Virus record (IMG/VR): IMGVR_UViG_3300035156_000206 | Coordinates: 1-64,000 of that record | Reading direction: 5' to 3' (one strand) | DNA length: 64,000 nucleotides | Shown here: positions 926-41,776 of the stretch, in pieces | Numbering within the stretch: the first letter of the stretch is position 1 | Layout of the letters: each line of letters opens with the position of its first letter | Translations under genes and position numbers: made by a program | The notes under the pieces: model-generated | What the model saw: the letters and a program-made list of their open reading frames with translations, nothing else | Database searches by the model: none | Told to the model about the DNA's origin: nothing

Positions 926-1325
926 CAGCCACTGCCTTCAAGGCTGCATAGTAAGCTTGGAGGGCACCTGCTTTTGCAGGACGGGTAAAAGAGGAACCAT
1001 CAATCTGGTAGGCTGTGACCACGCCTTCGATGTAGGCTTCTTCATCTTCAGTGCAGCGCTCTTGCACCACAACATTGTCGATGACGAGTGAGCGCTCACT
1101 GGCACAATCGAAGTAGGAGAAGTTGCCGCCTGGAGAAGCGATCACGAACGCCTCGATGTTGTAGACGTCCGATTCGAGACCAACGTACCACAATTCGAGG
1201 TCGCCGTCTTCACCCATCTTGTGGCACTGGTTGTGGCTGTGAATGGACAGGTCAATGTCACCATCGAACTTCATCACGGTGAACAGTGCTGCCAGGTTGG
1301 ATGCTGCTGTGATTGCGTTAATCAT
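903..1325 (-). CDS. Hypothetical protein
   Basis: 140-aa ORF directly downstream of repeat promoter and AAGGAG RBS. Confidence 0.8.
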   Translation of the reverse strand: MINAITAASNLAALFTVMKFDGDIDLSIHSHNQCHKMGEDGDLELWYVGLESDVYNIEAFVIASPGGNFSYFDCASERSLVIDNVVVQERCTEDEEAYIEGVVTAYQIDGSSFTRPAKAGALQAYYAALKAVADGSYRGS

Positions 1326-1336
1326 TTTGTACTCCT

Positions 1337-1383
1337 TCGTCAGTTGATGTAATCATTATACTGACTTTTGGAAGAAAGTCAAC
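1337..1383 (-). promoter_or_regulatory. Conserved early promoter+leader repeat
   Basis: GTTGACT-17-TATAAT GATTACATCAACTGACGAA then GGAG. Confidence 0.9.
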
Positions 1384-1415: not shown

Positions 1416-1988
1416 TTAATCGTACAGCGAACGATTGCTTGGTGCTTTAGGCTTTTTGGCTTTGGTCACACCCATCTTGATCAGCCATGCTTCGAAGTCA
1501 ACCAAGGTCATCATGATTGGGCCCAGATTGATGTCATCGTCTTGATGTCCGGTGCCTTCTCTGAACTGGTTGTATGGGAGGCAGTGGCCATCATCCTGCA
1601 ACTGGATAGAGTTCTTCCACTTGATGTATGTGAGCTGGTAGAACTCAGTGGGCTTCAGGCGGCACGACAGTTGCTTGCAGATGTACTTGATGATGTCTTC
1701 ATCAGGGAGAACCACATCCTTGACTGCACCAAGGTTGGCCTTGGCCAGGAATGCATCCAGCTCATCGATCGAGGTGAAGGTCTGGCGCTTCTTGACGTTG
1801 ACAACCTCGACGTTGACAACCTCGACGTTGTATTCCTTCTTGCCCGTCAACCAGTTCTTGTCGATGTCGAGATCAATCAGAAACTGACCCTTTGGAGTCG
1901 AGGCCCGAAACACCTGCATGTCCGGAGCATCGTGATACTTAGCGCGGCGTACCAGATTGTACTTCGCTTTGAGTTCTGTGAGTGTCAT
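1416..1988 (-). CDS. Hypothetical protein
   Basis: 190-aa ORF between repeat promoter and terminator. Confidence 0.85.
   Translation of the reverse strand: MTLTELKAKYNLVRRAKYHDAPDMQVFRASTPKGQFLIDLDIDKNWLTGKKEYNVEVVNVEVVNVKKRQTFTSIDELDAFLAKANLGAVKDVVLPDEDIIKYICKQLSCRLKPTEFYQLTYIKWKNSIQLQDDGHCLPYNQFREGTGHQDDDINLGPIMMTLVDFEAWLIKMGVTKAKKPKAPSNRSLYD
1794..1830. repeat. 15-bp tandem repeat, 2.5 copies, encodes NVEVV-NVEVV
   Basis: GACGTTGACAACCTC x2 plus GACGTTG. Confidence 0.85.
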
Positions 1989-2001
1989 TTGGTTTCTCCA
2001 T

Positions 2002-2049
2002 TTCGTCAGTCGATGTAATCATTATACTGACTTTTGGAAAAATGTCAAC
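2002..2049 (-). promoter_or_regulatory. Conserved early promoter+leader repeat
   Basis: TTGACA-17-TATAAT...GACTGACGAAA. Confidence 0.9.
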
Positions 2050-2051
2050 GG

Positions 2052-2414
2052 TTACAAAATGGGGCCACGTTGTGCATACGAGTAGTTGTTGACCATATCG
2101 GATTCCATCAACTCAACAAGGGACAAGTCCTTGGCGGCGTATCCACAGTACATGTCCGTCACATCCCCTGTGATATCAAACAGGCGACCGTTGATCCTGG
2201 ACAGGATATGACAATTATTGGTCAAGCAGACAGGCTGGGCATCAAAGGCCAATGCCAACATGATGGCAAGGTTGCCGCAATTACCTTTTGAGAATATCTC
2301 GGTGATGATATTCTTGGCGCAATCATCTGGATCAAGACCAGGACACCAACTTGCATCCTGGCTCCGAAGAGCAGATAAGAACAACTGCACCTCGGCTAAA
2401 TTTATCTGTTTCAT
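2052..2414 (-). CDS. Hypothetical protein, possible Cys-His-Asp (papain/transglutaminase-like) fold
   Basis: 120 aa; GNCGNLA...HILSRINGRLFDITG spacing. Confidence 0.7.
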   Translation of the reverse strand: MKQINLAEVQLFLSALRSQDASWCPGLDPDDCAKNIITEIFSKGNCGNLAIMLALAFDAQPVCLTNNCHILSRINGRLFDITGDVTDMYCGYAAKDLSLVELMESDMVNNYSYAQRGPIL

Positions 2415-2426
2415 TCAATCTCCAAA

Positions 2427-2474
2427 TTCGTCAGTCGATGTAATCATTATACTGACTTTTGGAAATTTGTCAAC
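2427..2474 (-). promoter_or_regulatory. Conserved early promoter+leader repeat
   Basis: TTGACA-17-TATAAT...GACTGACGAA. Confidence 0.9.
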
Positions 2475-3269: not shown

Positions 3270-3301
3270 CTTGCTCTCGCTGTTTGTTAACCGATGAAGA
3301 C

Positions 3302-3330
3302 AGTATACGGTGGCTTCATCAGTTAGTCAA
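3302..3330 (-). promoter_or_regulatory. sigma70-type promoter for prepilin-like ORF and tRNA cluster
   Basis: TTGACT-17-TATACT inside an inverted repeat. Confidence 0.75.
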
Positions 3331-3666: not shown

Positions 3667-4397
3667 TAGGCTTTACGCATCACAAACAGAGTCATCGTCT
3701 TGTCTGGAATCTGTTGCAGTTTGTCCTGCTTCAGTTTCCATTGCTCCATGCCGGCAGGCGTCAGGCCCGAAGGTGCTGTACGAGGCAGGGGACGTGCAGA
3801 CCACAACTTGTCATCTGGCAGGTTGCTACCGTTGTAGACGAACGGTTTGCCATTTGCGTCTGGCATTGGGACACCATCAACAATCACATTGATGACATAG
3901 CCACGTGCACCAGCGGCGAGCTTCTTCCACAACTCAGCACCACCTTGGTATTGGGTGTTGTCGCTGATGATCGTCAAGCCCATCTCAACGAGGGCAACGT
4001 ACAGCATCGCACCGTAGCCACCACGAGCCATCTTCGGATCATTTGCAACGACGAGGTCGACCTGCACCGCACCTGGCAATTTAAGGCCCGGATTGCTGTT
4101 GCTGATCATCTGCTCTTTAAAGTCCAGCGTCACGTAGACGGCTGCACCAGCGACATTGTCTGCAGGACGAGTACCGCGCTTACCAATGAATGCTCCGCTG
4201 TGGTCTTGGCGAATGTAGACGACGTAGTTCGGGTCGTCCTTCACCAGCTTGAATTCATCGGCCAAGGTCCGATCGCTAAAGAAGTGATCGAAGCTGCTGG
4301 TATCCATTTGGAGCTTTTTTGGTTTGCCATCGGCATCTTCAGGGGCGTATGGCATCTCTTTGAGCAGGTTCTCGTTAAGTATTTGGTCTAATCGCAT
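3666..4397 (-). CDS. Late protein with GNAT-like motif A and N-terminal ILNE, possible internal head protein
   Basis: 243 aa; MRLDQILNE; ARGGYGAMLY; TAAATA at 4420-4425. Confidence 0.7.
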   Translation of the reverse strand: MRLDQILNENLLKEMPYAPEDADGKPKKLQMDTSSFDHFFSDRTLADEFKLVKDDPNYVVYIRQDHSGAFIGKRGTRPADNVAGAAVYVTLDFKEQMISNSNPGLKLPGAVQVDLVVANDPKMARGGYGAMLYVALVEMGLTIISDNTQYQGGAELWKKLAAGARGYVINVIVDGVPMPDANGKPFVYNGSNLPDDKLWSARPLPRTAPSGLTPAGMEQWKLKQDKLQQIPDKTMTLFVMRKA

Positions 4398-4418: not shown

Positions 4419-4718
4419 TTATTTAGCCTCGAACTGAGACAAGAACTCCAGGCAGTCCTTCAAGCCATCACGGCCGACGAACACAATATGATCTTGATCT
4501 TCGGGGCCATAGACAACGAGGATGTTGCATTCGTCCATGTCGAGGCTCTGGCGACCATTACGATCCCCGTACACCCAGTGGCGACCATAGGCACCTGCTT
4601 TGGTGTTGATGAGCTCTTTGATCTCGTCATCATCGTATACCTTGTCCTGCGAGCCATGCGTGACGGCACCGAACACTTTAACCTCAGACAATGGAGGTGG
4701 GCTGTAGATGGTAATCAT
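4419..4718 (-). CDS. Hypothetical protein
   Basis: start moved to MITIYS after repeat leader. Confidence 0.75.
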   Translation of the reverse strand: MITIYSPPPLSEVKVFGAVTHGSQDKVYDDDEIKELINTKAGAYGRHWVYGDRNGRQSLDMDECNILVVYGPEDQDHIVFVGRDGLKDCLEFLSQFEAK

Positions 4719-4727
4719 TGAATGCCT

Positions 4728-4776
4728 TTCGTCAGTTGATATTCCTATTATACTGACTTTCTTACAAAAAGTCAAC
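4728..4776 (-). promoter_or_regulatory. Conserved early promoter+leader repeat
   Basis: TTGACT-17-TATAAT...AACTGACGAAAGG. Confidence 0.9.
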
Positions 4777-4793: not shown

Positions 4794-5087
4794 TTATGTC
4801 GCATCCGATGTGCGTCTTTGTGGCATTCTTGAGACCAGTTCTTCGAACCAGCCTGGGACGCGCTTGTAGTTGATGTACGCGGCAATGTGCTTGGGATAAA
4901 CTTGCTCCAGCTTTGCCAGGTCATCTGCATCAGCAATCCAGATCAACTCCCAGAGGGCGTTGTTGAATTTGTCTGCTGTGCCGTAGTGCTTGCATTTGAT
5001 TAGGGATAACTCTCCCTCGTCCAGATCGATGTCTGGCTTAGCATCCTCAGGACGCTGCTCTTCCTTAGGATCACCAATAATGTACAT
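4794..5087 (-). CDS. Hypothetical protein
   Basis: 97-aa ORF; GGAGG RBS; TTGACA-17-TATAGT promoter near 5120-5148. Confidence 0.8.
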   Translation of the reverse strand: MYIIGDPKEEQRPEDAKPDIDLDEGELSLIKCKHYGTADKFNNALWELIWIADADDLAKLEQVYPKHIAAYINYKRVPGWFEELVSRMPQRRTSDAT

Positions 5088-5166
5088 CTTGATACCTCCG
5101 TTGTGAGTGTCAGTAAGTCACTATACTGTGTTACGGAGGAAATGTCAACGATCACATCGCAAAAGG

Positions 5167-5186
5167 AAAAGGACCCGAAGGTCCTT
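5167..5186 (-). terminator. Terminator hairpin, same as 1392
   Basis: AAGGACC-CGAA-GGTCCTT with A run. Confidence 0.8.
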
Positions 5187-5191
5187 GTCTC

Positions 5192-5368
5192 TCAATCCAT
5201 TTCAGACTGAGTCAGTTTATCGATTGCTTGGTTGTAGCTTCGGCGCATCGCACGCATGAAAGCTTTGCGTCCTTTACGGCCGCTTGGTGCACAGCATGAG
5301 CAGTGCAAACCTCCACCACCGAGCTTGGCATGGCAGGTTTTGAGAAAGTGTTTCTTTTCGCGAATCAT
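5192..5368 (-). CDS. Small basic CxCC protein
   Basis: start moved to MIREKK after GGAG RBS; GGGGLHCSCC motif. Confidence 0.65.
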   Translation of the reverse strand: MIREKKHFLKTCHAKLGGGGLHCSCCAPSGRKGRKAFMRAMRRSYNQAIDKLTQSEMD

Positions 5369-6115: not shown

Positions 6116-6862
6116 TTACAGACCGTGCTTGATGATCAGGCCGAACACTTCGTCCAGGGACGAGACCTCATTCACCTTGATGCTGACCTGGCGTCCGCCG
6201 GCCATCGGGAACGTCATTTCGTAGCGCGGGATGTGCGTGGCTTCGCCGATGCGATCCATGTGGTTGGGCAACTGTTGAACCGGTGCCTTTGCAACAGGAG
6301 CAGCATGCGCGCCAGAGATGGTTTCCTTGTTCTCGGCCTTGCGAGCGAGACGTTCAGCCTTCTTCGATGCCGATTCAGCTTCTTCGGCCGAGCGGTGCAT
6401 ATTCTTCTGGTACGACACTTTGCTCTTGGCCGATGTGATGGCGCGCTGATGAGTGCCGAGTTGTTCTGGCGACATGTCAGCCGTTGGAATCGCTTGCAGT
6501 GCCAGCAGGGCCGTTTGTGCTGCTTCCATCTTCGGCTTGATCTCTGCTGCGGTGGTTGTTTTGCGTGCCATGGTATTTCCTTTCGTCATTTGAGTGGAGT
6601 GTGTCCAACCCGTTGGAGGTGTGTACTCGGTCTCTGTTCCAAGTTCACTATTAATCACGATACCCAATGTATCGCGTACATGCTCCCGCGCCTTTGTCAG
6701 GTTCGGGAAAGGCTGATCGTCTACCGTCCAGCGCTTCTCCGGATGAGGCATACGTACCCCATCCGAAGTCTCCCCACGAACAATGAACTGGTCAATGTCC
6801 GGGAAGGAGCCATAGCGCTTATTGGGAAACAACCTTATTGCTGTAGTCGCACTGTTCTTCAA
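6116..6862 (-). CDS. Hypothetical protein with possible internal start MARKTT at 6571
   Basis: 248-aa ORF; promoter TTGATT-17-TATAAT near 6910-6938; internal RBS TGACGAAAGGA. Confidence 0.75.
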   Translation of the reverse strand: MKNSATTAIRLFPNKRYGSFPDIDQFIVRGETSDGVRMPHPEKRWTVDDQPFPNLTKAREHVRDTLGIVINSELGTETEYTPPTGWTHSTQMTKGNTMARKTTTAAEIKPKMEAAQTALLALQAIPTADMSPEQLGTHQRAITSAKSKVSYQKNMHRSAEEAESASKKAERLARKAENKETISGAHAAPVAKAPVQQLPNHMDRIGEATHIPRYEMTFPMAGGRQVSIKVNEVSSLDEVFGLIIKHGL

Positions 6863-6933
6863 TATATCCCCTCGTCAGCTATTTTGATCAACGCTTAGTT
6901 GATAAGGCTATTATACTGAAATTTGGAAATTAA

Positions 6934-7620
6934 TCAACTCTTTTTTGTAAGATTGTGGTAATAGGTAGACGCACCAGCTTCTGTCAATCCTGCATCACGA
7001 ACTAGCTTCTTGATGACTGTCTTGCGGCTGCGGTCTTTGTTGCGCTTGATGATCCAGATGGCTTTGTCCTTCTTGGTACCAAATGCAATCTTCTCAGGCA
7101 TAGAGGTAGGAACATGGACTGGCTCCGAAGGAACGAGTCTGGTTTTGCAAGCAACACATTGGTACTTGTCCAACATGATCTTGCGGCGCATGATGCTGGC
7201 GTAGACGTGACTATCGTCGTTGCAAGCACAAAGGAACTTGTAGGTGGTGAACTGACGTTTGCTGATGTTCGTATCCAACCCATGACACCGATCAGGCTTC
7301 AGCCCCATCAGGATCATAATTGCCTTCCATTCCTTACCATGCGCTTGGGTATCATGTCCGTGAATGTGCTCTGTGATGACGTGAGCAACCTCATGAGGTA
7401 CAATTTGGTATAGGAACGCAGAAGGGTACGCACTCAGCAATATGGGATCGAAATTGACATGGTAGTGGATACCACGAGCCCAGCCAGCAGTCGTGTAGCT
7501 ACGCTGGTAGGTGATGATAAGAGGAGGAAGGTTTAAATCAGGATACACTGCCTCCACGCGTGCGATTGAGTCGAGGACGACAGCACGAACTTGGTTGTGG
7601 AGGTCAGGAGGGATGTTCAT
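6934..7620 (-). CDS. SprT-like zinc metalloprotease with Cys cluster and C-terminal repeat-family domain
   Basis: HEVAH (HExxH), HGKEWK, CxC...CxxC; C-terminal GLTEAGASTYYHN. Confidence 0.85.
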   Translation of the reverse strand: MNIPPDLHNQVRAVVLDSIARVEAVYPDLNLPPLIITYQRSYTTAGWARGIHYHVNFDPILLSAYPSAFLYQIVPHEVAHVITEHIHGHDTQAHGKEWKAIMILMGLKPDRCHGLDTNISKRQFTTYKFLCACNDDSHVYASIMRRKIMLDKYQCVACKTRLVPSEPVHVPTSMPEKIAFGTKKDKAIWIIKRNKDRSRKTVIKKLVRDAGLTEAGASTYYHNLTKKS

Positions 7621-7644
7621 GTCCCTATTTATGGGCAACTAATG

Positions 7645-7751
7645 CCATATGGGGTGAGTTGTGGGCCCGTAATTCGCGCTTCATCGCTAGCGCCGCCAAA
7701 GGCGGCAAAGCTTGGTTCGCACTTTTCTGTTTGCACAACCCACCCCATATG
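7645..7751 (-). ncRNA. Candidate ~106-nt structured RNA
   Basis: about 18-bp closing stem CATATGGGGTG-GGTTGTG/CACAACT-CACCCCATATG plus inner hairpins. Confidence 0.65.
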
Positions 7752-7758
7752 ACACTAT

Positions 7759-7898
7759 GTAGATGACTAAAGGGTGGCCACCGAAGGCGCCTGCGAGAAG
7801 GGAAGCCTGACGAAAGGAGGAGGTCTCAGCCCGCCTTGGGGGGAAGGTGGATCTCTACTTTACGCAAGCGGCCTCGGCGCCACTCTTTAATCGACTAC
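7759..7898 (-). ncRNA. 140-nt sRNA with C-rich loops, antisense to early leader/SD
   Basis: promoter 7905-7933 predicts +1 near 7898; ends pair; hairpin contains ACCUCCUCCUUUCGUCAG. Confidence 0.75.
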
Positions 7899-7904
7899 AA
7901 GATC

Positions 7905-7933
7905 ATTTTATCACATACATCGTCAAAAGTCAA
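7905..7933 (-). promoter_or_regulatory. sigma70-type promoter of the 140-nt sRNA
   Basis: TTGACT-17-TAAAAT. Confidence 0.8.
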
Positions 7934-7949
7934 CGATTAATTCTGGGAT

Positions 7950-8213
7950 GAAGATTCAACTAGAGCTACTGCTGATGCAGGACTTAGGTAGCTACTCCCA
8001 GTCGTACACCAGCCTTCGAGTCCATCTCCGCTGACTCGCGCTCGATCCGGCATCCCCTGTCAGGGCCCTTCAACTGATTGGCTGCATGAGTGGTCTCAGT
8101 GTTCACGAACTGGTGCTCTATGCGCGGCACTCAACGAGCCGCAGAACGCGCGTTCATTAGTACTAAGCCCTACAGGCTGACAGGCCTGTTCACTCACTTC
8201 TAGTTGAACCTTC
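7950..8213 (-). ncRNA. Candidate 264-nt multi-helix RNA
   Basis: 15-bp closing helix GAAGGTTCAACTAGA/TCTAGTTGAATCTTC; CCTGTCAG/CTGACAGG; several hairpins; no credible ORF. Confidence 0.7.
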
Positions 8214-8322
8214 TTTATGAGCATGTCTCTATATAATGGCATGCGCATAAAGAAGATCCCTCTTCTTCCTAGTTTCCGTTCTAGGTTATGGGGCACTCCC
8301 CATTCGGTAACTGCAAGTTATT

Positions 8323-8475
8323 TGGTACCGGGGGCAGGCCTCGAACCTGCAAAAAAGCAAACTCAACACGGCCGTGCCTTGTTCGCCCTTACAACCCATG
8401 GCCTCCCCACTCACCTAGTCTAGCTTCACTGAGCAGGTACTAACACAGGGCGTCTACCACTTTCGCCACCCCAGC
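8323..8475 (-). ncRNA. tRNA-Leu-like RNA with about 60 extra nt in the anticodon/variable region
   Basis: GCTGGGG/CCCCGGT acceptor, Leu-type D-arm GGCGAAAGTGGTAGACGC, GCAGG-TTCGAGG-CCTGC T-arm, ACCA; 153 nt. Confidence 0.75.
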
Positions 8476-8483
8476 ATAACTCT

Positions 8484-8645
8484 TTAGTCGACGAGGTCAC
8501 CCGCGTCAACAAAACTTTCACCCCAACGAACCATCAGGCCAAGCAGGAAGCCAACAACGGCACCGATAACAGGCTCTGCCCAGACATAATGTCCAACGAC
8601 GGCACCGAGAGCAGTACTCAACACCAACAGCAAAAATGTCAACAT
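8484..8645 (-). CDS. Small membrane protein, 53 aa
   Basis: hand-translated MLTFLLLVLSTALGAVVGHYVWAEPVIGAVVGFLLGLMVRWGE...; AAGGAG RBS. Confidence 0.65.
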   Translation of the reverse strand: MLTFLLLVLSTALGAVVGHYVWAEPVIGAVVGFLLGLMVRWGESFVDAGDLVD

Positions 8646-8661
8646 GCACTACTCCTTAAAA

Positions 8662-9059
8662 TGGGTCCCCCTTTCGATGACAGGGACTAGTGAACCTTTC
8701 GGCTCAGTAGCGGGGGATTATTTCAACCCTGCAAAGTTAGTTAGGCGTAAGCCGCTACTTTGAATTGTGAGTCGTTTGCATTTACATGCTTGCATCTTTT
8801 CGCCTTACGGCCGAGGATCGCTTCTCGTGTTGTCAACCTACGGTTATCTCACCACGTCGAAACCAGGTCGCCCCCATCAGCTGCACTTTCAGGTCTATGT
8901 CTGGTGTACCAGTCCTGAGAATTGATGTTATCTCATCTTCGAAAGCGCAGTTGGTGGAGGCGGCGGGAATCGAACCCGCGTCCGCAATGCCTTCACTTTG
9001 GCATCTGGATAGGTCTTACCCTACCCCACAACAATGTATCCGTTGATTTCTCAACTGAT
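8662..9059 (-). ncRNA. ssrA: Circularly permuted (two-piece) tmRNA
   Basis: acceptor piece ending GGTTCGATTCCCGCCGCCTCCACCA at 8952 is transcribed before GGGGGCGACCTGGTTTCGAC at 8875; tag ANDSQFKVAAYA at 8741-8779; outer ends approximate. Confidence 0.9.
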
Positions 9060-9065
9060 GAAGCC

Positions 9066-9094
9066 ATTATATAGACTTCTTCAGTTGAAGTCAA
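9066..9094 (-). promoter_or_regulatory. sigma70-type promoter of the tmRNA/ncRNA operon
   Basis: TTGACT-17-TATAAT inside inverted repeat. Confidence 0.8.
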
Positions 9095-9103
9095 CAGTTA
9101 ATT

Positions 9104-9439
9104 TCACAAGAGCTGATCAGCCAGCTTGACCAACTCGGCACGGTCCAGTTCAAACTCCGGACGCAGACGCTCCTGTTTCGACGATTGTGCCTCAGGCCAG
9201 TATGCCAGCTCATGAGGAGTCTTCATGGTCGAATGGTGAATCCCAGCCAAGCGGTTCCACTTCAACTCGGTTGGATGGAAGACCGAGATGATCGCATGCG
9301 ACTGGAAGTCATACGAGTCGCTCTTGATCGAGATGGACAACTTGTGCCCCTTCATTTCGAAAACTTGATGCAGCGTCAATGACTGACGCGCTTTAAGAAT
9401 TTCGTCCTGAATCATTTTGATCTTGGATGCTTTTGCCAT
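9104..9439 (-). CDS. Hypothetical protein
   Basis: 111 aa; downstream of repeat promoter, AAGGAG. Confidence 0.8.
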   Translation of the reverse strand: MAKASKIKMIQDEILKARQSLTLHQVFEMKGHKLSISIKSDSYDFQSHAIISVFHPTELKWNRLAGIHHSTMKTPHELAYWPEAQSSKQERLRPEFELDRAELVKLADQLL

Positions 9440-9455
9440 TTTGTTCTCCTTGGGT

Positions 9456-9503
9456 TTCGTCAGTTGATATAGCTTATTATACTGACTTTTGGAAAAATGT
9501 CAA
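9456..9503 (-). promoter_or_regulatory. Conserved early promoter+leader repeat
   Basis: TTGACA-17-TATAAT...AACTGACGAAA. Confidence 0.9.
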
Positions 9504-9955: not shown

Positions 9956-10146
9956 GGCGCAGTGTAGGTGAACAAGCACATTGCTTGTTGTTGAAGGACG
10001 GAACGACCACGGTCGCAATTGTTGATCTTGGTGACTGCCGCAATGGCAACCAAAGGATCGTCAAACGCGACGGTGATAGTATGGACAGCAACCTGACCAC
10101 CATTTGGGGTCATGGTAGTGGTCACCAGGATTTGGAATTGGCTCAT
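9952..10146 (-). CDS. Hypothetical protein
   Basis: 64 aa; ATGA overlaps on both sides. Confidence 0.65.
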   Translation of the reverse strand: MSQFQILVTTTMTPNGGQVAVHTITVAFDDPLVAIAAVTKINNCDRGRSVLQQQAMCLFTYTAP

Positions 10147-10715
10147 GCCCAGATCCCCTTGCGCAGGTTGTATTCGTACGTCGTCGCACCTGGCTTCGAC
10201 AACTGGAGTTCTTTCATGAACAGCTCGATGATCTGGTGCTTGTCAGGCATGTTCGCAATGTTCTGCTTGTACAGTGCGATACAGCGGTCTTTCTTCGACA
10301 TGCCACTCGAACGAGCGATGCGTGGCTTCTTGGCTGTGGTACCGAGTTCTTCAGCCGCAATGACTGCTTCAGCGTGCTTCTCGGCAATCACGTCAGGATT
10401 GACCCATGGGTTCTTTGCGAGGAACTCACCAGCCTTCTTCTGCGCCAGAGCAATGGCTTGGTCAATCTCCATGTACTCTTTCATGTTGTAGAAGCGGACC
10501 GATTCCTGGATCAGGTAGCCAAACACCAATTCGGCAACCTTAACATCCTTCGTTTCCACATCCTGCTCCGTGAGCTCCTTGATGTAGGCATCGAAGTTGC
10601 ACTTCAGACCTGCAGCACGCTCAATCAGGTTGTCGCGGACGAAGTACTGTGCCGAAACAAAACTGTCAGTTGGAATGCCCATCGCTTTGATACGTTCAAT
10701 GATTACTGGTACCAT
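10143..10715 (-). CDS. Protein with C-terminal repeat-family domain
   Basis: start moved to MVPVII after AAGGAG; LSKPGATTYEYN motif; promoter at 10753-10780. Confidence 0.8.
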   Translation of the reverse strand: MVPVIIERIKAMGIPTDSFVSAQYFVRDNLIERAAGLKCNFDAYIKELTEQDVETKDVKVAELVFGYLIQESVRFYNMKEYMEIDQAIALAQKKAGEFLAKNPWVNPDVIAEKHAEAVIAAEELGTTAKKPRIARSSGMSKKDRCIALYKQNIANMPDKHQIIELFMKELQLSKPGATTYEYNLRKGIWA

Positions 10716-10821
10716 GATGACTTCTCCTTCGTCGTTGGATTCAATATAGACAATTATACTCACTTTTGGAAAAATGTCAACAGTTGCTTTCCAAATAAAT
10801 AAAGCATCATAGGAGCACACA

Positions 10822-11073
10822 ATGGCAATAGAACCATCCGGCATCATATATTTGTTGAAGAAGATCGAGGTAGCGGCAGATATCGAAACGACACTGGCAG
10901 AGATTTATATCAACCTGCCAACATGCATCAATCGCGCAATTGGAACCCTCCAGTGTACTCAATTAGAAAACGAGTACCGAGGGGTCATGCAGAAACTGAA
11001 GGTCGACTTTGAGTTCGACCTTCATCAAGCTTTCAAAGACCAGGTTGGAAAGATCCTGGCCCGTCCACGTTAA
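10822..11073 (+). CDS. Hypothetical protein, probably late
   Basis: 83 aa; AGGAG RBS; TAAATA at 10796-10801. Confidence 0.65.
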   Translation: MAIEPSGIIYLLKKIEVAADIETTLAEIYINLPTCINRAIGTLQCTQLENEYRGVMQKLKVDFEFDLHQAFKDQVGKILARPR

Positions 11074-11606
11074 TGGACTGTGGTGTTCGGCGGCACTGAA
11101 GCTTCTGGCTCACCATTCTCGGCCCGCTCCTGAGCCGCCCGTCCGGCCATCATCAATGATACGATGGCTGCGACGAGTGGATGCTGCTCGCGCTCCTCTT
11201 CATCATCGTCACCATGAACCATTTGGCAACCAGGGCACCAGCCTTCAGGCTTGTCTTCATCGCCGGCCTTGGTTTTGATCTCGGCCTTCTTGCGAGCCAC
11301 GAATTCGTCAACAGCACCCTTCGTGATGATCTTGTGCTCTTCCAGGATCACGAGCATCTCGCCCATGACTTCGGACACGCCAGCAATCAAGCCAAGTGGC
11401 ATCGCAATTTGTGCGTGCCCGATTTGGTTCATGGTAAGGCCAGGTGGCGCCTGTTCCAGGATGTGTTCCATCGCATCAGCAAACTTCTCATGCAACGCAG
11501 CGGCCCCGGCCGCAACATGCAAGATGCGTTCTTCTTTTGACATACCAGCGAGGAACTCCTCGTGGTCCTTTTTCTGCTCAGCTTGCTTCTCTTTGGTCGT
11601 TGCCAT
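11070..11606 (-). CDS. Hypothetical protein
   Basis: 178 aa; GACGAAAGGG leader; promoter near 11637-11664. Confidence 0.8.
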   Translation of the reverse strand: MATTKEKQAEQKKDHEEFLAGMSKEERILHVAAGAAALHEKFADAMEHILEQAPPGLTMNQIGHAQIAMPLGLIAGVSEVMGEMLVILEEHKIITKGAVDEFVARKKAEIKTKAGDEDKPEGWCPGCQMVHGDDDEEEREQHPLVAAIVSLMMAGRAAQERAENGEPEASVPPNTTVH

Positions 11607-11737
11607 TTTATTCCCTTTCGTCTAAGTGATGTGTTCATTATAGACAGAATTTGTGTAAAGTCAACAGTAATATTGAGATAGCATTATTAAGCAAAAGCTA
11701 TTATAATGAGGGAACTATACAACTTCGGGAGTTTCCC

Positions 11738-12545: not shown

Positions 12546-12593
12546 GTTGACTTTCTTCCAAATGTCAGTATAATGAAATCATCGACTGACGAA
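12546..12593 (+). promoter_or_regulatory. Conserved early promoter+leader repeat, plus-strand copy
   Basis: TTGACT-17-TATAAT GAAATCATCGACTGACGAAAGGGAG. Confidence 0.9.
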
Positions 12594-12606
12594 AGGGAGA
12601 TACAAA

Positions 12607-12972
12607 ATGAAATTTAGTGACCTCACAAGCGATGTTGCACGGGTAGATTATCTGAAGGCTCAGCTGACCCAGGATGACCGGTTGATCATGCGTTGCCTAT
12701 TGGCAATCTACAATAACCAGACCTTGGATGAACAAAGCTCCAAGACTGTTAACAAGCACAATGGCATCGGCTTTAAGTCGATGGATGCGAAGATCCTCAC
12801 GGAGTATGTACAGACGGCAGAGCGTCGTCGTGTGACTGAGGCTCTGGAGAACAAGAATGTTGAATTCTGCTTGGAGCGTGTACTGTCCGAGAAGCAGGCA
12901 GCATTCCTGCGCCGTGCAATGCCAAAGTATGCCCGTCAACTTTTGAAGGTAATCAAGGAGAAACAAAAATGA
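12607..12972 (+). CDS. Conserved phage hypothetical protein
   Basis: 121 aa; LLAIYNNQT.DEQ...HNGIGF pattern. Confidence 0.8.
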   Translation: MKFSDLTSDVARVDYLKAQLTQDDRLIMRCLLAIYNNQTLDEQSSKTVNKHNGIGFKSMDAKILTEYVQTAERRRVTEALENKNVEFCLERVLSEKQAAFLRRAMPKYARQLLKVIKEKQK

Positions 12973-13719: not shown

Positions 13720-14085
13720 TCAATCCTCCATGTCCTTCCATACCCCGAACTCCACTACCGAGATAGGTTGGCCGTACTCAGTCGCCGATTTGTGCCAGTG
13801 CTCGATCAGACTAACAGGCACATCAGGATATGCAGCCACTACCTGCTCAATAATCAAACTATCAAACAAGTCCTGACGCATCTGGGTCAGATACAGATTG
13901 GCCGTATCCAGAGCCAATGCCTCATCGTCAAATGCCTCACAGGTGTAACCCTTGGCCTGACCGAATGTGCTGGAGGACGACACACGATATGTGGTCCCAG
14001 CTGCACCCTCATACTTCGTGCAAGTAACATGCATCACGGTGTCACCAAACACGTGACTAAATTGCAACAGGGTTGTGGTTTTCAT
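13720..14085 (-). CDS. Hypothetical protein
   Basis: 121 aa; repeat promoter, AAGGAG. Confidence 0.8.
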   Translation of the reverse strand: MKTTTLLQFSHVFGDTVMHVTCTKYEGAAGTTYRVSSSSTFGQAKGYTCEAFDDEALALDTANLYLTQMRQDLFDSLIIEQVVAAYPDVPVSLIEHWHKSATEYGQPISVVEFGVWKDMED

Positions 14086-14095
14086 CTTTTACTCC

Positions 14096-14143
14096 TTCGT
14101 CAGTTGATGTAGTCATTATACTGACTTTTGGAAATTTGTCAAC
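14096..14143 (-). promoter_or_regulatory. Conserved early promoter+leader repeat
   Basis: TTGACA-17-TATAAT...AACTGACGAAGGAG. Confidence 0.9.
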
Positions 14144-14785: not shown

Positions 14786-15342
14786 GCTGTTGCCTTATCG
14801 TCTGGGTTGACGTATACTTGCATCAGCAGTTCCCGCGGTTGCATCTTGACCTTTGGGAACAGGGCATTGTGTCCCATGTTGACCACGACCGGCTTGCCAC
14901 AGTGTTCGCCACCAGCAACCACGACGCCGCTTTCGCCAGTATCAATTGTCTTCACGACCATGCCGGCCCACATTGGGAACCGAGGCGGAAGCCACTTGAC
15001 AATATCGGCGGTCCATTCGAACATCTGCAGTGCGGTGATCTTGCCCGCATCATGTGCGTGGAAGTAGTACTCGGCCAGCTCTGGAATGGTGACGCACTCA
15101 TCGACGCCCATGCCATAGTAGCCCATGCCGTACAAGGCATTCAGCCGTTCCGTAACCGATGTGGTCTGGAGGAAGATGTAGGCATCGATTACGTGGAACA
15201 GCTTCTCGTCCGAAAAGAAGTTGCCACGCCACGGCAGACCTTTGATTTGGTCCGAATTGGTGATCACGAGCTCGCCGATTGCATCCAGGCGACGTCGCAT
15301 CTCAGCAGCATTGCCGGTCAGTAGTATGGTCTTGTCAGTCAT
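14782..15342 (-). CDS. Hypothetical protein
   Basis: 186 aa; repeat promoter, GGAG. Confidence 0.8.
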   Translation of the reverse strand: MTDKTILLTGNAAEMRRRLDAIGELVITNSDQIKGLPWRGNFFSDEKLFHVIDAYIFLQTTSVTERLNALYGMGYYGMGVDECVTIPELAEYYFHAHDAGKITALQMFEWTADIVKWLPPRFPMWAGMVVKTIDTGESGVVVAGGEHCGKPVVVNMGHNALFPKVKMQPRELLMQVYVNPDDKATA

Positions 15343-15355
15343 TTTGTATCTCCGT

Positions 15356-15403
15356 TTCGTCAGTTGATGTAATCATTATACTGCTTTTTCCAAAATAGTC
15401 AAC
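15356..15403 (-). promoter_or_regulatory. Conserved early promoter+leader repeat, back-to-back with a + promoter
   Basis: TTGACT-17-TATAAT; shared palindrome GTCAACTGTTGAC. Confidence 0.9.
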
Positions 15404-15925: not shown

Positions 15926-16411
15926 TTACTCTGCGTTCCACGAACTGGTTGGCAGACCCACAAATTCGATTTCGTCGCCAATGCGCATATAGCGTTGGAT
16001 GTGGTATTGGTTCATCATGTGATCAAACCACAGGCAGGTGTTGGTACCAACATCAATACCAACAACTTCAAATTCACGGCTGGCGCCGGCCGAGCGTTGC
16101 AGGAAGTAGTCAAGGTGGTCGAATGACTCCACCCGGCCGAGGTCGTACACATGGTCCCCCTGAGCTTCCAGGGCACAGAAGGTCAGCAGTGGTACAGCAT
16201 CATTCTCGCAGCGGATGACCCCGTGCCAATCCTGAGACAACTCAACCGCGCTGATGCCCCATTCACAACCTGGCACATCATGCCAAAGAATTTGGTTCGT
16301 TTCCTGCTTCACGGCAATAGGTTCCATGCCCGTATAACCAGCAGCTTCGAATGCCTGACCTATCATGGCACAGGTCATTTCCTTTTCTACTTCCAGGCGC
16401 TTGAGTTTCAT
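15926..16411 (-). CDS. Hypothetical protein
   Basis: start moved to MKLKRL after repeat leader. Confidence 0.8.
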   Translation of the reverse strand: MKLKRLEVEKEMTCAMIGQAFEAAGYTGMEPIAVKQETNQILWHDVPGCEWGISAVELSQDWHGVIRCENDAVPLLTFCALEAQGDHVYDLGRVESFDHLDYFLQRSAGASREFEVVGIDVGTNTCLWFDHMMNQYHIQRYMRIGDEIEFVGLPTSSWNAE

Positions 16412-16421
16412 TTTATTCCCT

Positions 16422-16469
16422 TTCGTCAGTTGATGCAATCATTATACTGATTTTTCCAAAATTGTCAAC
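16422..16469 (-). promoter_or_regulatory. Conserved early promoter+leader repeat, back-to-back with a + promoter
   Basis: TTGACA-17-TATAAT...AACTGACGAAAGGG. Confidence 0.9.
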
Positions 16470-17658: not shown

Positions 17659-17873
17659 GATAGTTTCTCGCTTTCTTGGTTATTCGCATCAGCATTATTG
17701 CTTCAGTCGATATATTCATTATACTTACTTTTCATCTTTTGTCAACAGTTTCTTTTTCGCTGCCACCGGTTCCTGTTAACACTTCTTCCCAACCGATGAG
17801 ATCAGTATACTTGCTTTTCAACTAAAGTCAACGGCATTCCCTTGTTGACTTCTATGGGAAGCCTCCGTATAAT

Positions 17874-17957
17874 AGACTTACCGGTCCCTAGGAGAGAGGT
17901 GGTATGGGGATTTGGTTCAGGCGGGGGAACCTGGACCAAGGACCACGGCCTAGGTGA
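17874..17957 (+). ncRNA. Three-copy small RNA/peptide cassette, copy C
   Basis: TTGACT-17-TATAAT then AGACTTACCG-N6-AGGAGAG-N4-GGTATGGGGATTTGGTTC; 3' end uncertain. Confidence 0.55.
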
Positions 17958-18029: not shown

Positions 18030-18385
18030 GGTCCTCCACAAATGCCCGACCCCCTGGTCCTACCAGAACCAAGATCCACAATTGGGTTTTGACAACCTGA
18101 AACTAGGTCCTCCACAAATGCCCGACCCCCCTGTACCAAACCACAATTGGGATTTTGAAGACCAAACCACAATTGGGAAAACATGGTACATTGCAATTGG
18201 CCAACCCCCTGCACCAAACCACAATTGGTCAAATGGCACAATTCCACAATTGGGATTTTGGTCGATTTCAAATGGGGGTGGACGGACCGGTCGACAATTG
18301 ACAACTGGTTGTTTCAGAACCACAACAGGAGGATGAGGTACAACTAGGGATGGCACGATATGAACGAACCAGATCCACAAATGGG
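18030..18385. repeat. Iteron-like direct repeats, putative origin or packaging/terminal signal
   Basis: CCACAATTGG at 18076, 18141, 18167, 18219, 18244; 24-bp GGTCCTCCACAAATGCCCGACCCC at 18030 and 18106. Confidence 0.85.
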
Positions 18386-21932: not shown

Positions 21933-22127
21933 TTTTACCCCTGCTACGGTTACTGTTGTACATACGGGCTATTTATTGTGGACAAAATGTCTGGATTTGT
22001 ACTATAATGAACAATGGGTTAGGTTGTCCCCACTATACTGGTTTTTCGGCAACTTTTCAACAAATCTTCTTGACTGGTTGCAGCTATGTGTTGTACGTTA
22101 ATCGTTTTGTCTCTTTTGGGGAGTATC

Positions 22128-22337
22128 ATGGGTTCTGGTTTCTTGGATGGGTTGATGCGTGACTTGTTGATAAGTTTGCTAGCGGTTGTGTTCGCGGTTG
22201 GGTTATTGAGTGCAGGCGGTATGTATCTCTACATGAGGAGTTCTATCGATACGCCAGAGGTAGCTGCTAGTAAGTTGGCTAAGGAGCGTGCTCGTGTTAT
22301 GGAGGAATGTATTAAGGCTCGTATGGTGTGTAAGTAA
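22128..22337 (+). CDS. Small membrane protein, C-x5-VC family
   Basis: TM helix then CIKARMVC. Confidence 0.7.
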   Translation: MGSGFLDGLMRDLLISLLAVVFAVGLLSAGGMYLYMRSSIDTPEVAASKLAKERARVMEECIKARMVCK

Positions 22338-22401
22338 GACTGCTTGTCAGCCATGCGGGGGATATTGTATAATAAAGAGTTGATCTCAAAGGGAAGCTGA
22401 T

Positions 22402-23370
22402 ATGAACTGGTTGTTTGTAGGTGGTATGTTTGATGATGTAGGTGGTCGTGCTTCTGGTTACTTTGGGAAGTTGTGGCAGGCTGTGGCTGCTCTTTATCCT
22501 GGTGCTAATACGTTCGTGGTCAATGGGGGCAAGTTTAGTAAGTTGGCTGACTTGGCTACTTATAAGGCGACGCATATTGTATGGATGGTTGATGTGTCCA
22601 ATGAGTATGAGAAGTTGTTGCCTTCTATTATGGAGGCTAATCCTGGTGCTGTATTGATTCAGTCCAAATCGAACATTGGTGGGAGGTATAGTAGGGAGCA
22701 GTTGTTTGCGAGAATGCGTGCTTCTGGTGCCGAGATGTTGATTGAGTTTGATCGGGGTTGTGTTGGGCATATTACGGCTGGGTTGTTGTCTGTTAGTGGG
22801 AGGTACATTGGATACTCTGGTAGTGACATTGGGAATCTGGCTGCTGATATTGGTATTGAGGTAGATCGGATTGGGAGTTTGTTGTACCCATTGCGTAGGG
22901 AGAAGAAGTTGTTGCCTGTAAAGGATCATCCTGGTGCGTTTGGTGTTGTGCGGAAGAACCATGTGCATGAGGGGGTTGATTTGTATGGGGAGGTTGGGGA
23001 AAGTGTTGATGCGATGGAGACTGGGATTGTAGTTGGTCTTTATCAGTTCACAGGGGAGGATGTTGGTAGTCCTTGGTGGAATGATACATTTTGTGTTTTG
23101 GTTGCAGGGGAAAGTGGTGTCATCAATTATGGTGAGATACATCCTTGGTCTCCTGATTGGGTTAAGGTTGGTGACACAATTGAGAGGGGTGCGCAAGTTG
23201 GTACATTGCTGAGCGTCTTGAAGAAGGACAAGGGGAAGCCGATGACTATGTTGCATATTGAGAGGTATGTGATTGGGACAAAGCGGCATATTGATTCATG
23301 GGATTTGGACAAGGTGTGGCCGGCGAAGTTGCTGGACCCGACTGTCTTGTTAAGGAGTGCCATGTTATGA
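22402..23370 (+). CDS. M23-family peptidase with unknown N-terminal domain
   Basis: HEGVD (HxxxD) and LHIE (HxE variant) motifs in the C-terminal half. Confidence 0.8.
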   Translation: MNWLFVGGMFDDVGGRASGYFGKLWQAVAALYPGANTFVVNGGKFSKLADLATYKATHIVWMVDVSNEYEKLLPSIMEANPGAVLIQSKSNIGGRYSREQLFARMRASGAEMLIEFDRGCVGHITAGLLSVSGRYIGYSGSDIGNLAADIGIEVDRIGSLLYPLRREKKLLPVKDHPGAFGVVRKNHVHEGVDLYGEVGESVDAMETGIVVGLYQFTGEDVGSPWWNDTFCVLVAGESGVINYGEIHPWSPDWVKVGDTIERGAQVGTLLSVLKKDKGKPMTMLHIERYVIGTKRHIDSWDLDKVWPAKLLDPTVLLRSAML

Positions 23371-24245
23371 AAACTGTAGCTATTATTGGGGCTCGTGGGG
23401 TTGTATCTACGATGTTGCAGGCTAAGTTGGCTGATGACCCGGAAATTGTGGTTGCTGTTGTTGAGACTTCCTTGTTCATGTTGGCTCCCAATCCAAGGAT
23501 GGCATTAGCAGGTGCAGACTTGGTGGTTGTATGTACTGAGGAGGCTTTAAGCAGGGAAGTTGTTGCCAAAATCGATCCTGATATGGCTATTTTGGACATT
23601 AGTCCTGCGTTCAGGTGCGATTCTGAATGGGTATATGGGATGTCTACGTTGATGGGGACGAATCAGCTGATAAATGGGGCGAAGCGAGTGGCGAATCCTG
23701 GTTGTATGGCGACTGCTGCCATCTTGATTCTGCAGCCATTGGTTGAGGAGGAGTTGGTTGGTACATTTGATCCTTTGTATCTGGATGCGATGATTGGTTA
23801 TTCGGCTGGTGGTCGCAAGATGATTGCGAAGTATCAGGCTGGGGTTGCGATGAAGAAGCCACCATTTGAAATCATGACTAGTCTGGTTGAAGCGCACCCC
23901 CATGTTGGTGAGATCAAGCATGTTACTGGGTTGAGGGGTGATGTGGTATTGGCTCCGAAGATTGGTACCTACTTTAGTGGTATTCGGATGTCGATTATGG
24001 TACCAAGGACGTATGCTCCGTTCTTGTTGGGGATGTACAATTTCGCTTATGCTGGTACCGACATTGTGGTTGAGAACGACAACCCGAAGAAGATATGTGC
24101 TGATGAGATGGAGGGGAAGCCTGGAGCGATCATTCGGGTTTATCAGCATGGGGAATCGTGCCTTGTTGTGTGTACCATGGACAATTTGTTTAAGGGTGCA
24201 GTTGACACAGCCTATGAGAACATTGGGTTGATGTTAGGGATGTAA
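23367..24245 (+). CDS. argC: N-acetyl-gamma-glutamyl-phosphate reductase-like (ArgC/ASADH family)
   Basis: VAIIGARG Rossmann start, RVANPGC catalytic Cys, GYSAGG, HPHVGEI, DNLFKGA. Confidence 0.8.
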   Translation: MKTVAIIGARGVVSTMLQAKLADDPEIVVAVVETSLFMLAPNPRMALAGADLVVVCTEEALSREVVAKIDPDMAILDISPAFRCDSEWVYGMSTLMGTNQLINGAKRVANPGCMATAAILILQPLVEEELVGTFDPLYLDAMIGYSAGGRKMIAKYQAGVAMKKPPFEIMTSLVEAHPHVGEIKHVTGLRGDVVLAPKIGTYFSGIRMSIMVPRTYAPFLLGMYNFAYAGTDIVVENDNPKKICADEMEGKPGAIIRVYQHGESCLVVCTMDNLFKGAVDTAYENIGLMLGM

Positions 24246-40591: not shown

Positions 40592-41710
40592 TTATTCTGC
40601 GTAGTACAGTTCTTTGGCCTTGGTAATATCAAAGACCGGCGGAATGGAAAGGTCTTCGTTGACGAACAACGAAGACATCTTGGTGCTCGTGCTGTGGAAC
40701 ATGCCCTTGGTCGTCAGGTACTTGATGACGGCCCGGACAGTGATGTATTCTTGAAGCGTTTGTGTCTGGTTAAGCAGTCCCATCAACCACGTAAGACCAT
40801 GCGAAGGCCGGAGGCCGATGCTGAAGGTGGACTTGATCGCTTTGGACAGTGCCGGGATGTTCACGGTAGACAACTGCAACATGATCTCTGGCAACTGCAA
40901 CGGCTCAACAGCATCAAAGCCGAAGATGTTGGAGATCGCTTTCGCACTATTGAGTGTGAAGTTGAGGTTCAGGTTGTAGTTCTTGTCCAGCGAATCGATC
41001 AGGATCGACAGGCGCTCTTCTGTAACTGTGATTGCAGCCGAACCATCAAGATAGTCCTCACGTTCCGAACGCGAATCGGTTTCGACTGTTGCGCTGCTGC
41101 CGATTGCATCCACGTTCTTCCAGATGGGCGGCGTCATGCAGAACGCTTCACCCGAAACGAAAGCCAGCACGCCACGTTCTTCGCTGATGATGCCGGTACG
41201 GAAGACAGGTTTGTTAGCCTCGTACAAGTCCACACAATCGACCTTCATCGTGCGGAACTTGCCATCGCGGCTGATTGGAATTGGGTAGTCGTCACTCTTG
41301 AGGCGGTCAAGTGCGTCTTGCTCGACGTTGTAGACATAGCGACCATCGAAATACCAGGTCTGTTCACCCAGCTTGTTGTCGAGGTGATCGGTTACGAAGG
41401 TTTCGATCTTGGAGGTCCACTTCTGACCTGCTTCTTGGTTCAGGATGCCAGTTGCCAAGTCGCGTTCGATGTTGATTACTTCACCATCGTAACGGAGCAC
41501 GGCAATCTCTACCGGCTTCAGGTACTTGGTGAACTTCGTCTCTGCTACGAACTTCCGCATCACTGCGAATGGAACATCGACTTTGACCAACGCTTCGGTC
41601 CCTGCAGGAGCAGTACGGTCGATGATGTGCATCGAACCCCCAAGAGCCGTAGTGCAGCTCTTGAGCAGTTCGTAGTTGACGGTCAACAGCTCGCGGTTGA
41701 ATGGAAACAT
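40592..41710 (-). CDS. Hypothetical protein, 372 aa
   Basis: start moved to MFPFNR after CTGACGAAAGGG leader and promoter 41748-41775. Confidence 0.85.
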   Translation of the reverse strand: MFPFNRELLTVNYELLKSCTTALGGSMHIIDRTAPAGTEALVKVDVPFAVMRKFVAETKFTKYLKPVEIAVLRYDGEVINIERDLATGILNQEAGQKWTSKIETFVTDHLDNKLGEQTWYFDGRYVYNVEQDALDRLKSDDYPIPISRDGKFRTMKVDCVDLYEANKPVFRTGIISEERGVLAFVSGEAFCMTPPIWKNVDAIGSSATVETDSRSEREDYLDGSAAITVTEERLSILIDSLDKNYNLNLNFTLNSAKAISNIFGFDAVEPLQLPEIMLQLSTVNIPALSKAIKSTFSIGLRPSHGLTWLMGLLNQTQTLQEYITVRAVIKYLTTKGMFHSTSTKMSSLFVNEDLSIPPVFDITKAKELYYAE

Positions 41711-41720
41711 GGTAAACCCT

Positions 41721-41776
41721 TTCGTCAGTTGTTCAGATATGCTTATCATTATAAACATATTCTCAGAATTGTCAAC
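41721..41776 (-). promoter_or_regulatory. Distant variant of early promoter+leader repeat
   Basis: TTGACA-16-TATAAT...AACTGACGAAAGGG. Confidence 0.75.

Follow-up and report, generated by a model that had tools for sequence, protein, structure and literature searches.

A conserved small RNA gene of an uncultivated jumbo phage carries an exposed stretch complementary to the shared leader of early genes and may act as their common switch

Phage-encoded antisense RNAs described so far control single operons of temperate phages or host genes, whereas early shut-off in large lytic phages is attributed to proteins. The c4 antisense RNA of phages P1 and P7 is a structured small RNA whose exposed complementary segments pair around the ribosome binding site of a phage message and block translation (PMC12197685); it acts on one operon (icd-ant) for immunity, and it is cut from the same transcript that it controls. 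In phage T4, the translational repressor RegA and the endoribonuclease RegB give post-transcriptional shut-down of many early messages through a shared feature of their ribosome binding regions (PMC3014915), and both are proteins. On the target side, the Start-Associated Sequence of Cluster K mycobacteriophages is a 13-bp asymmetric repeat containing the Shine-Dalgarno core that sits just upstream of many non-structural, early gene starts and is conserved beyond what 16S pairing explains; several genomes have a single inverted copy that is not at a gene start, and the authors left open an RNA or protein partner (PMC3203893). In addition, cellular small RNAs of Firmicutes such as RsaE/RoxS and RNAIII use pyrimidine-rich unpaired segments, with UCCC/CCCC loops, to pair with purine-rich ribosome binding sites of several targets.

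The locus described here was compared with each of these systems. The proposed mechanism resembles that of c4 RNA and of the anti-Shine-Dalgarno small RNAs of Firmicutes, the proposed role resembles that of RegA and RegB, and the closest parallel on the target side is the Start-Associated Sequence. Unlike c4, the RNA would be encoded by a separate gene and would act on about 12 scattered transcription units of a large phage that appears to be lytic, and searches with the Rfam C4 family gave no match, either with gathering thresholds over the whole stretch of DNA analysed or at E <= 10 over positions 7600-8700. In contrast to RegA and RegB, the proposed effector is an RNA, and the shared feature is a 5'-terminal leader block plus the Shine-Dalgarno site. 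The leader differs from the Start-Associated Sequence in sequence and host phylum and in being tied to a promoter cassette; no RNA gene has been reported around the inverted copy of the latter, whereas here the inverted copy lies in a conserved structured RNA. With respect to the RNAs of Firmicutes, the C6 loop of our RNA is not conserved, the predicted specificity comes from a GUCAG extension, and no Rfam family matches. Literature searches, restricted to an open-access subset, found no phage RNA proposed to address a whole early regulon.

A conserved structured RNA gene on the minus strand

The window, that is, the whole 64,000-nt stretch analysed, comprises the first 64 kb of IMG/VR contig IMGVR_UViG_3300035156_000206, which is 292 kb long and so of jumbo-phage size. 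Its first 17 kb are mostly minus-strand small genes of unknown function, interspersed with six tRNA genes and a permuted (two-piece) tmRNA at 8650-9044 (minus strand; promoter at 9094..9066) with tag ANDSQFKVAAYA. This tmRNA is conserved in relatives (L017:5755-6175 and L027:526-1131; L numbers designate the sequences recovered in our searches), and the L017 copy also matches the betaproteobacterial tmRNA model, which hints at the host group. Further along the window lie NAD-salvage, kinase and helicase genes, and the nearest isolated relatives by NAMPT are Ralstonia and Xanthomonas jumbo phages at about 50% identity. G-rich repeats of the form GGGGGGTCGG(G) cluster at the very start of the contig (1-170, plus strand) and are also found near 18073 (minus strand) and 20863 (plus strand), and could be a terminal or packaging-related repeat. 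The GC skew jumps to +0.40 over the 2-kb bin 22001-24000, where long ORFs overlap on both strands, and a collagen-repeat protein starts just downstream at 24325.

The RNA gene lies in a 1-kb stretch without credible ORFs, between a SprT-like metalloprotease gene (6934-7620, minus strand; Pfam PF10263, E = 1.9e-12) and the tmRNA. An earlier note, made from the sequence alone, had proposed at 7759-7898 a closed 140-nt minus-strand RNA that is antisense to the leader and Shine-Dalgarno site of about 12 early genes. Our analysis confirmed this observation, with the corrections given below. A minus-strand promoter TTGACT-17-TAAAAT with TG before the -10 lies at 7933..7905 and scores 10/12, and the 140 nt from 7898 to 7759 fold with their 5' and 3' ends paired (-59.9 kcal/mol, z = -4.6). 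The plus-strand 18-mer CTGACGAAAGGAGGAGGT at 7807-7824 is unique in the window even with three mismatches allowed.

To determine whether this RNA is conserved, we searched for homologues, and relatives could be reached only through neighbouring proteins. A 65%-identical SprT-like protein led to L008, a 952-bp contig; a conserved early protein (12607-12972) led to L017/L018 and L024/L025; and a 58-aa protein of L025 led to L027. A covariance model built from the window and L008 hit the homologues at 185.7, 111.1 (L027:2169-2316) and 89.6 bits (L017:4448-4594), and found no paralogue in the window. Other routes were unproductive. A blastn search of isolated phages with 7400-9200 gave one 35-nt match, unrelated to the RNA, and no isolated phage matches the locus at the DNA level; a tblastn search of isolated phages with the SprT-like protein gave only distant Vibrio hits. 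Exact-pattern scans for the core in viral, metagenome and genome collections returned the source contig plus chance hits in unrelated leaders or coding regions (L005, L006, L011, L012 and L013), and homologues of the 111-aa neighbour led to unrelated bacterial and temperate-phage contigs. L007, with a 61% relative of the SprT-like gene, has tRNAs and a different 5' region instead of the RNA, and the intergenic region of L009, a 31% relative, has only a terminator and a promoter.

All four copies of the RNA, from related uncultivated phages, keep the promoter layout, with a -10 of GAAAAT in L008, whose contig starts inside the -35, and TTGACA-17-GAAAAT in L017 and L027. They also keep a long interrupted closing helix, whose inner part is built from different sequences in each phage and still pairs. 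The four-sequence consensus has 45 pairs, 8 of them with changes on both sides, and on the three-sequence alignment 98.6% of cells are paired, against 35-50% when the partners are slid. Indels between homologues are not multiples of three and break any reading frame, and a small ORF was therefore rejected. The strand is fixed by several points: intrinsic terminators follow the RNA on the minus strand in L008 (3 nt after the helix) and in L017 (about 85 nt after), G-U pairs in the closing helix are read on this strand, and the model scores 163 bits on the minus strand against 27.9 bits on the plus strand. These results, together with the promoter, all favour the minus strand and speak against a CsrB/RsmY-type GGA sponge, which would require transcription of the GGA-rich plus strand. 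Searches with Rfam 15 models, at gathering thresholds and at E <= 10 over the locus, gave only the tmRNA and tRNAs, with no hit to 6S RNA, SRP RNA, other known structured RNAs or Y RNA/YrlA, characterized by a Ro-binding stem and a tRNA-like module; the only resemblance to the latter is a long terminal stem with a pyrimidine-rich loop. Altogether, we hold with high confidence that 7759-7898 is a genuine conserved non-coding RNA gene with its own conserved promoter.

The closing helix is about 32 bp in the window and longer in the relatives, and it carries an apical three-way junction made of a conserved AAGUAGAGAU strand, hairpin P2 and an invariant strand. Hairpin P2 (7826..7854, minus strand) pairs GAGAUCCA with UGAGACCUC at its base, which covaries (C-G to G-C, A-U to G-C), whereas its tip and loop differ in every homologue. 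The C6 loop, which the earlier note had described as exposed on a second hairpin, is the window's version of this variable tip and is not conserved in any of the three homologues, so that a functional role for this hairpin and its loop is unsupported. The invariant strand is a 22-nt core, CUCCUCCUUUCGUCAGGCUUCC, at 7801..7822 (minus strand), identical in all four homologues while the surrounding helices diverge, and its 5' 16 nt are the anti-leader and anti-Shine-Dalgarno segment. The weak UCAG/CUGA stem of the earlier note is not supported by the four-sequence consensus, which places the anti-leader in an open junction strand. A first consensus fold had paired the anti-leader with an internal leader-like strand; it was rejected because it is 7-10 kcal/mol worse than the minimum in all three sequences tested, because it leaves unexplained why the 3' strand of the inner helix is complementary in each phage, and on the four-sequence consensus. 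We therefore take the anti-leader to be exposed. In the window RNA the unpaired probability is mostly 0.4-0.8 over the 5' two-thirds of the core (the anti-SD and UUUCGU part) and falls to 0.1-0.4 over CAGGCUUCC.

The surroundings of the RNA bear on two alternative readings. A cis-acting leader or riboswitch of the SprT-like gene was considered, since in the window and in L008 the RNA lies directly upstream of that gene, in L008 in the order promoter, structured RNA, terminator, gene. In the window, no promoter-like site was found between 7905 and 6937, and the SprT-like gene is probably transcribed by read-through from the RNA promoter. The window copy of the RNA has no terminator of its own, which counts against the trans-acting reading given below. 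On the contrary, in L017 and L027 a tRNA-His and a gene of 211-214 aa separate the RNA from the SprT-like gene, in L017 a terminator also lies between them, the long and stable closing helix has no alternative pairing to the terminator, and L007 has the gene without the RNA. This reading is contradicted by synteny and is very unlikely. The second alternative is a stable or processing RNA of the tRNA/tmRNA island with a different job, such as an RNase III processing stem for the co-transcribed tRNA-His or SprT-like message, a protein sponge or a regulator of host genes, the match to the leaders having no function. The gene always lies between the tmRNA and tRNA-His or the SprT-like gene, a helix of 32-40 bp is by inference a plausible RNase III substrate, and T4 also carries stable RNAs of unknown function in its tRNA cluster. 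However, a processing stem alone does not explain an invariant single-stranded 22-mer, and the complementarity to the leaders is unlikely by chance and is kept together with the leader in three phages; we consider this alternative unlikely.

Further structured elements were observed around the RNA. A 118-nt element at 7640-7757 (minus strand), closed by a near-perfect 24-bp stem (z = -5.95), sits between the RNA and the SprT-like start; it is absent in relatives, L008 and L017 having ordinary intrinsic terminators there instead, and it could be an RNase III site or an unusual terminator. Upstream of the RNA (7950-8255, minus strand), a closed domain of about 264 nt spans 7950-8213 next to a hairpin CUUCUUUAUG...CAUAAAGAAG at 8210-8255, without Rfam match, and the stem sequence of that hairpin recurs in L017 (about 4915-4990, minus strand). 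L017 also carries at about 5067-5208 (minus strand) a tRNA-Leu-like sequence with a class II D-arm, a T-arm GGAGGUUCGAGUCCUCC, a CCA end and an insertion of about 60 nt, which neither ARAGORN nor the Rfam tRNA model called. In L007, a closed hairpin-like RNA of about 100 nt (AACAUCUGGGCCUGCUAU...AUAGCAGGCCCAGAUGUU; L007:240-345) lies between tRNA-Met and tRNA-Cys and is another candidate stable RNA of the tRNA island.

Shared leaders of the early promoter cassettes

We next examined the sites complementary to the RNA. The earlier note had listed twelve of them, with exact 11-nt matches at 4725, 6578, 12586, 16419 and 41718, 12-13 bp with one bulge at 1332, 1996, 14092 and 15350, and 8-9 nt at 2427, 9455 and 11614, and all twelve carry this partial complementarity. 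Eleven lie just upstream of start codons, and ten of those sit behind full TTGACA-17-TATAAT cassettes, each running from GTTGACa through a 17-nt spacer, TATAAT and about 10 nt into CTGACGAA, a Shine-Dalgarno site and ATG. Site 6578, on the contrary, is internal to the 248-aa ORF 6116-6862 and is not a leader. The true leader of that gene, CUGACGAGGGG before the TTG at 6862, had been missed, as had a variant at about 10735. The mechanical ORF starts of 10143-10847 and 4419-4775 (both minus strand) are probably too long, since the cassette leaders point to ATG 10715 and ATG 4718 as the real starts.

Predicted targets with the shared leader lie on the minus strand at 1323..1382, 1986..2048, 2412..2473, 4716..4775, 9437..9503, 14083..14142, 15340..15402 and 16409..16468, and on the plus strand at 12547..12609, the only one on that strand, whose orthologues in five relatives keep CUGACGAA. 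Variant cassettes, all on the minus strand, lie at 6860..6937 (TTGATT-16-TATAAT, leader CUGACGAGGGG; the L017 orthologue has the leader UACUGACGAAAGGAAG), at 10713..10780 (leader CAACGACGAAGGAG) and at 11604..11664 (leader UAGACGAAAGGG), and an outlying copy of the leader, with a longer gap after the -10, lies at 41708..41775 (minus strand). A search with the window-type cassette pattern found only the source contig, and one with the L007-type pattern found nothing.

About 12 early cassettes in the window share the 5' leader AUCAACUGACGAAAGG. This block is kept in L017, L021, L024 and L027, while the -35/-10 spacer and the bases just after the -10 diverge, the transcribed block retained in the relatives being ATCAACTGACGAAAGG. 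With an inferred start point about 7 nt after TATAAT, the messages would begin AUCAACUGACGAAAGG, and the complement in the RNA would cover about +6 to +18, running into the Shine-Dalgarno site, 8-12 nt before the start codon.

These data bear on the possibility of a shared DNA site, in which a phage or host DNA-binding protein would recognise double-stranded CTGACGAAAGG just downstream of the early start points, as a roadblock or repressor, and one inverted copy inside the RNA gene would serve the same protein. A double-stranded site reads the same in either orientation, and in the window the leader half ACTGAC forms an inverted repeat with GTCAGT upstream of the -10. However, in L017 and L021 the upstream half GTCAGT is mostly replaced (TTCCAGT, TCTGT, TGAAGT) while the leader half is kept, so the conserved unit is the 5' end of the message and not a DNA palindrome. 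In addition, the copy in the RNA gene sits in the one invariant, unpaired strand of a structured RNA, flanked by further invariant bases, and the substitution pattern of the leaders (see below) fits RNA pairing better than protein-DNA reading. A shared DNA site is accordingly regarded as unlikely.

Two other promoter groups were found. Promoters in front of the tmRNA and tRNA genes (9051-9088 and about 3290-3323, minus strand; L027 near 334, 7183 and 9935) carry their own inverted repeat of the ACTGAAGAAG...CTTCATCAGT type bracketing the -10, which differs from the early cassettes and may be an operator for a separate regulator. A second repeated cassette family, TATAAT-AGACTTACCG...GGAGAG-AGAGGT-ATGGGGATYCGGTTC, was found on the plus strand at about 17860-17905 and 15443 of the window, near 14833 and 17471 of L017, and near 3986, 6558 and 8346 of L021; its conserved part runs into the first codons (MGIRF...), and its leaders are not predicted targets of the RNA (-5.4 kcal/mol).

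Predicted pairing between the RNA and the leaders

To estimate the specificity of pairing, several scores were considered. Simple duplex energies did not separate the leaders from many purine-rich coding sites, whole-RNA duplex scoring gave artefactual long duplexes, and RNAcofold was dropped because pairing to a loop enclosed by the closing helix is a pseudoknot in that model. We therefore added duplex energy to the ensemble cost of opening the paired intervals on both molecules. Ten cassette leaders of the window scored -8.8 to -15.6 kcal/mol and took 10 of the best 11 places among 120 crude start sites: -12.3 (1323..1382), -13.3 (1986..2048), -11.3 (2412..2473), -14.0 (9437..9503), -8.8 (10713..10780), -13.9 (12547..12609), -12.3 (14083..14142), -14.7 (15340..15402), -15.6 (16409..16468, the best of the 120) and -11.4 (41708..41775). 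The cassette at 4716..4775, with an 11-nt exact complement, was left out of this scoring, and an eleventh site flagged as a cassette scored +5.0. The other start sites averaged -0.4 kcal/mol, with a 5th percentile of -5.6, and broad targeting of Shine-Dalgarno sites, including those of the host, which the earlier note had suggested may also be hit, is not predicted. The L017 RNA scored -10 to -16.5 kcal/mol against most of its own cassette leaders. An exact 11-nt complement to the consensus leader occurred in 0.05% of 20,000 composition-matched shuffles of the RNA. It has to be noted that the cassettes are paralogous, so that the enrichment is in effect one coincidence and not twelve, and the Mann-Whitney p of the energy comparison overstates it.

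Part of the complementarity is not specific to this pair. Individual leaders pair over only 8-11 contiguous bases, the conserved GGCUUCC after the anti-leader has no partner in the leaders, and eight of the paired bases (GAAAGGAG with CUCCUUUC) would be expected from any extended Shine-Dalgarno site facing any mimic of the 16S tail, only CUGAC/GUCAG being specific. The RNA could then be a general mimic of the 16S rRNA 3' tail, since it presents ACCUCCUCCUUUC, close to the ...CACCUCCUUUCU 3' end common in bacteria, and would either compete with ribosomes for any strong extended Shine-Dalgarno site or titrate a host factor that recognises that tail, the extra match to CUGAC being incidental. A hairpin followed by a short linker and then the anti-SD recalls helix 45 plus the tail, and the betaproteobacterial match of the L017 tmRNA hints at such a host. 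Against this, ordinary phage start sites carrying GGAG are predicted to bind weakly, the invariant block continues through GUCAGGCUUCC, which has no counterpart in 16S, and a five-base extra match at a fixed register has an estimated chance of about 1 in 1000 (4^-5). This reading also appears unlikely.

With regard to covariation, the core and the leader motif are both unchanged in every phage where both are visible (the window phage, L017 and L024/L027), and no covariation was seen because neither varies. In the leader 8-mer CUGACGAA across 31 cassette groups, 12 transitions keep a wobble pair with the RNA (C to U, A to G) and 1 would break it, and a simple binomial estimate gives p of about 0.02; there are also 7 transversions. 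A few of these groups are misalignments, orthologues are only crudely merged, and transcription-linked deamination of the sense strand could give the same bias, so we count this result as suggestive only.

A possible antisense control of the early genes

The interpretation put forward in the earlier note, that one phage RNA shuts off or times translation of an early regulon with leaders standardised to match it, is supported in part. The analysis establishes the RNA gene, its strand, structure and conservation, the complementarity and its predicted specificity, whereas the production of the RNA and any change in target expression, the transcription start points, pairing in cells, repression as the sign of the effect, and its timing are inferred. 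Our best reading, with a probability of about 0.45 for the whole mechanism, is a trans-acting RNA that occludes the ribosome site of a standardised early leader. In this view, host RNA polymerase would make the RNA from a moderate promoter, and the long helix of about 32-40 bp would hold out the apical junction, whose 3' strand, CCUCCUUUCGUCAGG, is taken as single-stranded and is invariant. This strand would base-pair with positions about +6 to +18 (CUGACGAAAGGAG) of the roughly 30-nt leader that begins at least 12 early transcription units. Pairing would cover the Shine-Dalgarno region, block 30S binding and might expose the messages to decay, and as the RNA accumulates the whole early set would be turned down together. 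The RNA promoter is weaker than the consensus cassettes, with a -10 of TAAAAT or GAAAAT, which would fit delayed accumulation, although this is an inference.

The prediction is a sharp one, in that it names 13 complementary bases. A broader reading, tentative but not excluded, is that one conserved RNA is the common post-transcriptional off-switch, or timer, of an entire early regulon, the phage clade having standardised the first 16-20 nt of a dozen or more early messages so that a single antisense seed can address them all. This would be an RNA-based equivalent of T4 RegA, and it might also explain other unexplained start-associated repeats in phages, such as that of Cluster K with its single inverted copy. 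An RNA that addresses a whole early regulon through a standardised leader would be a new layout for temporal control and would offer a compact, portable switch of one RNA and many targets. It would also explain why promoter cassettes in this clade keep their transcribed 5' block more strictly than their spacers.
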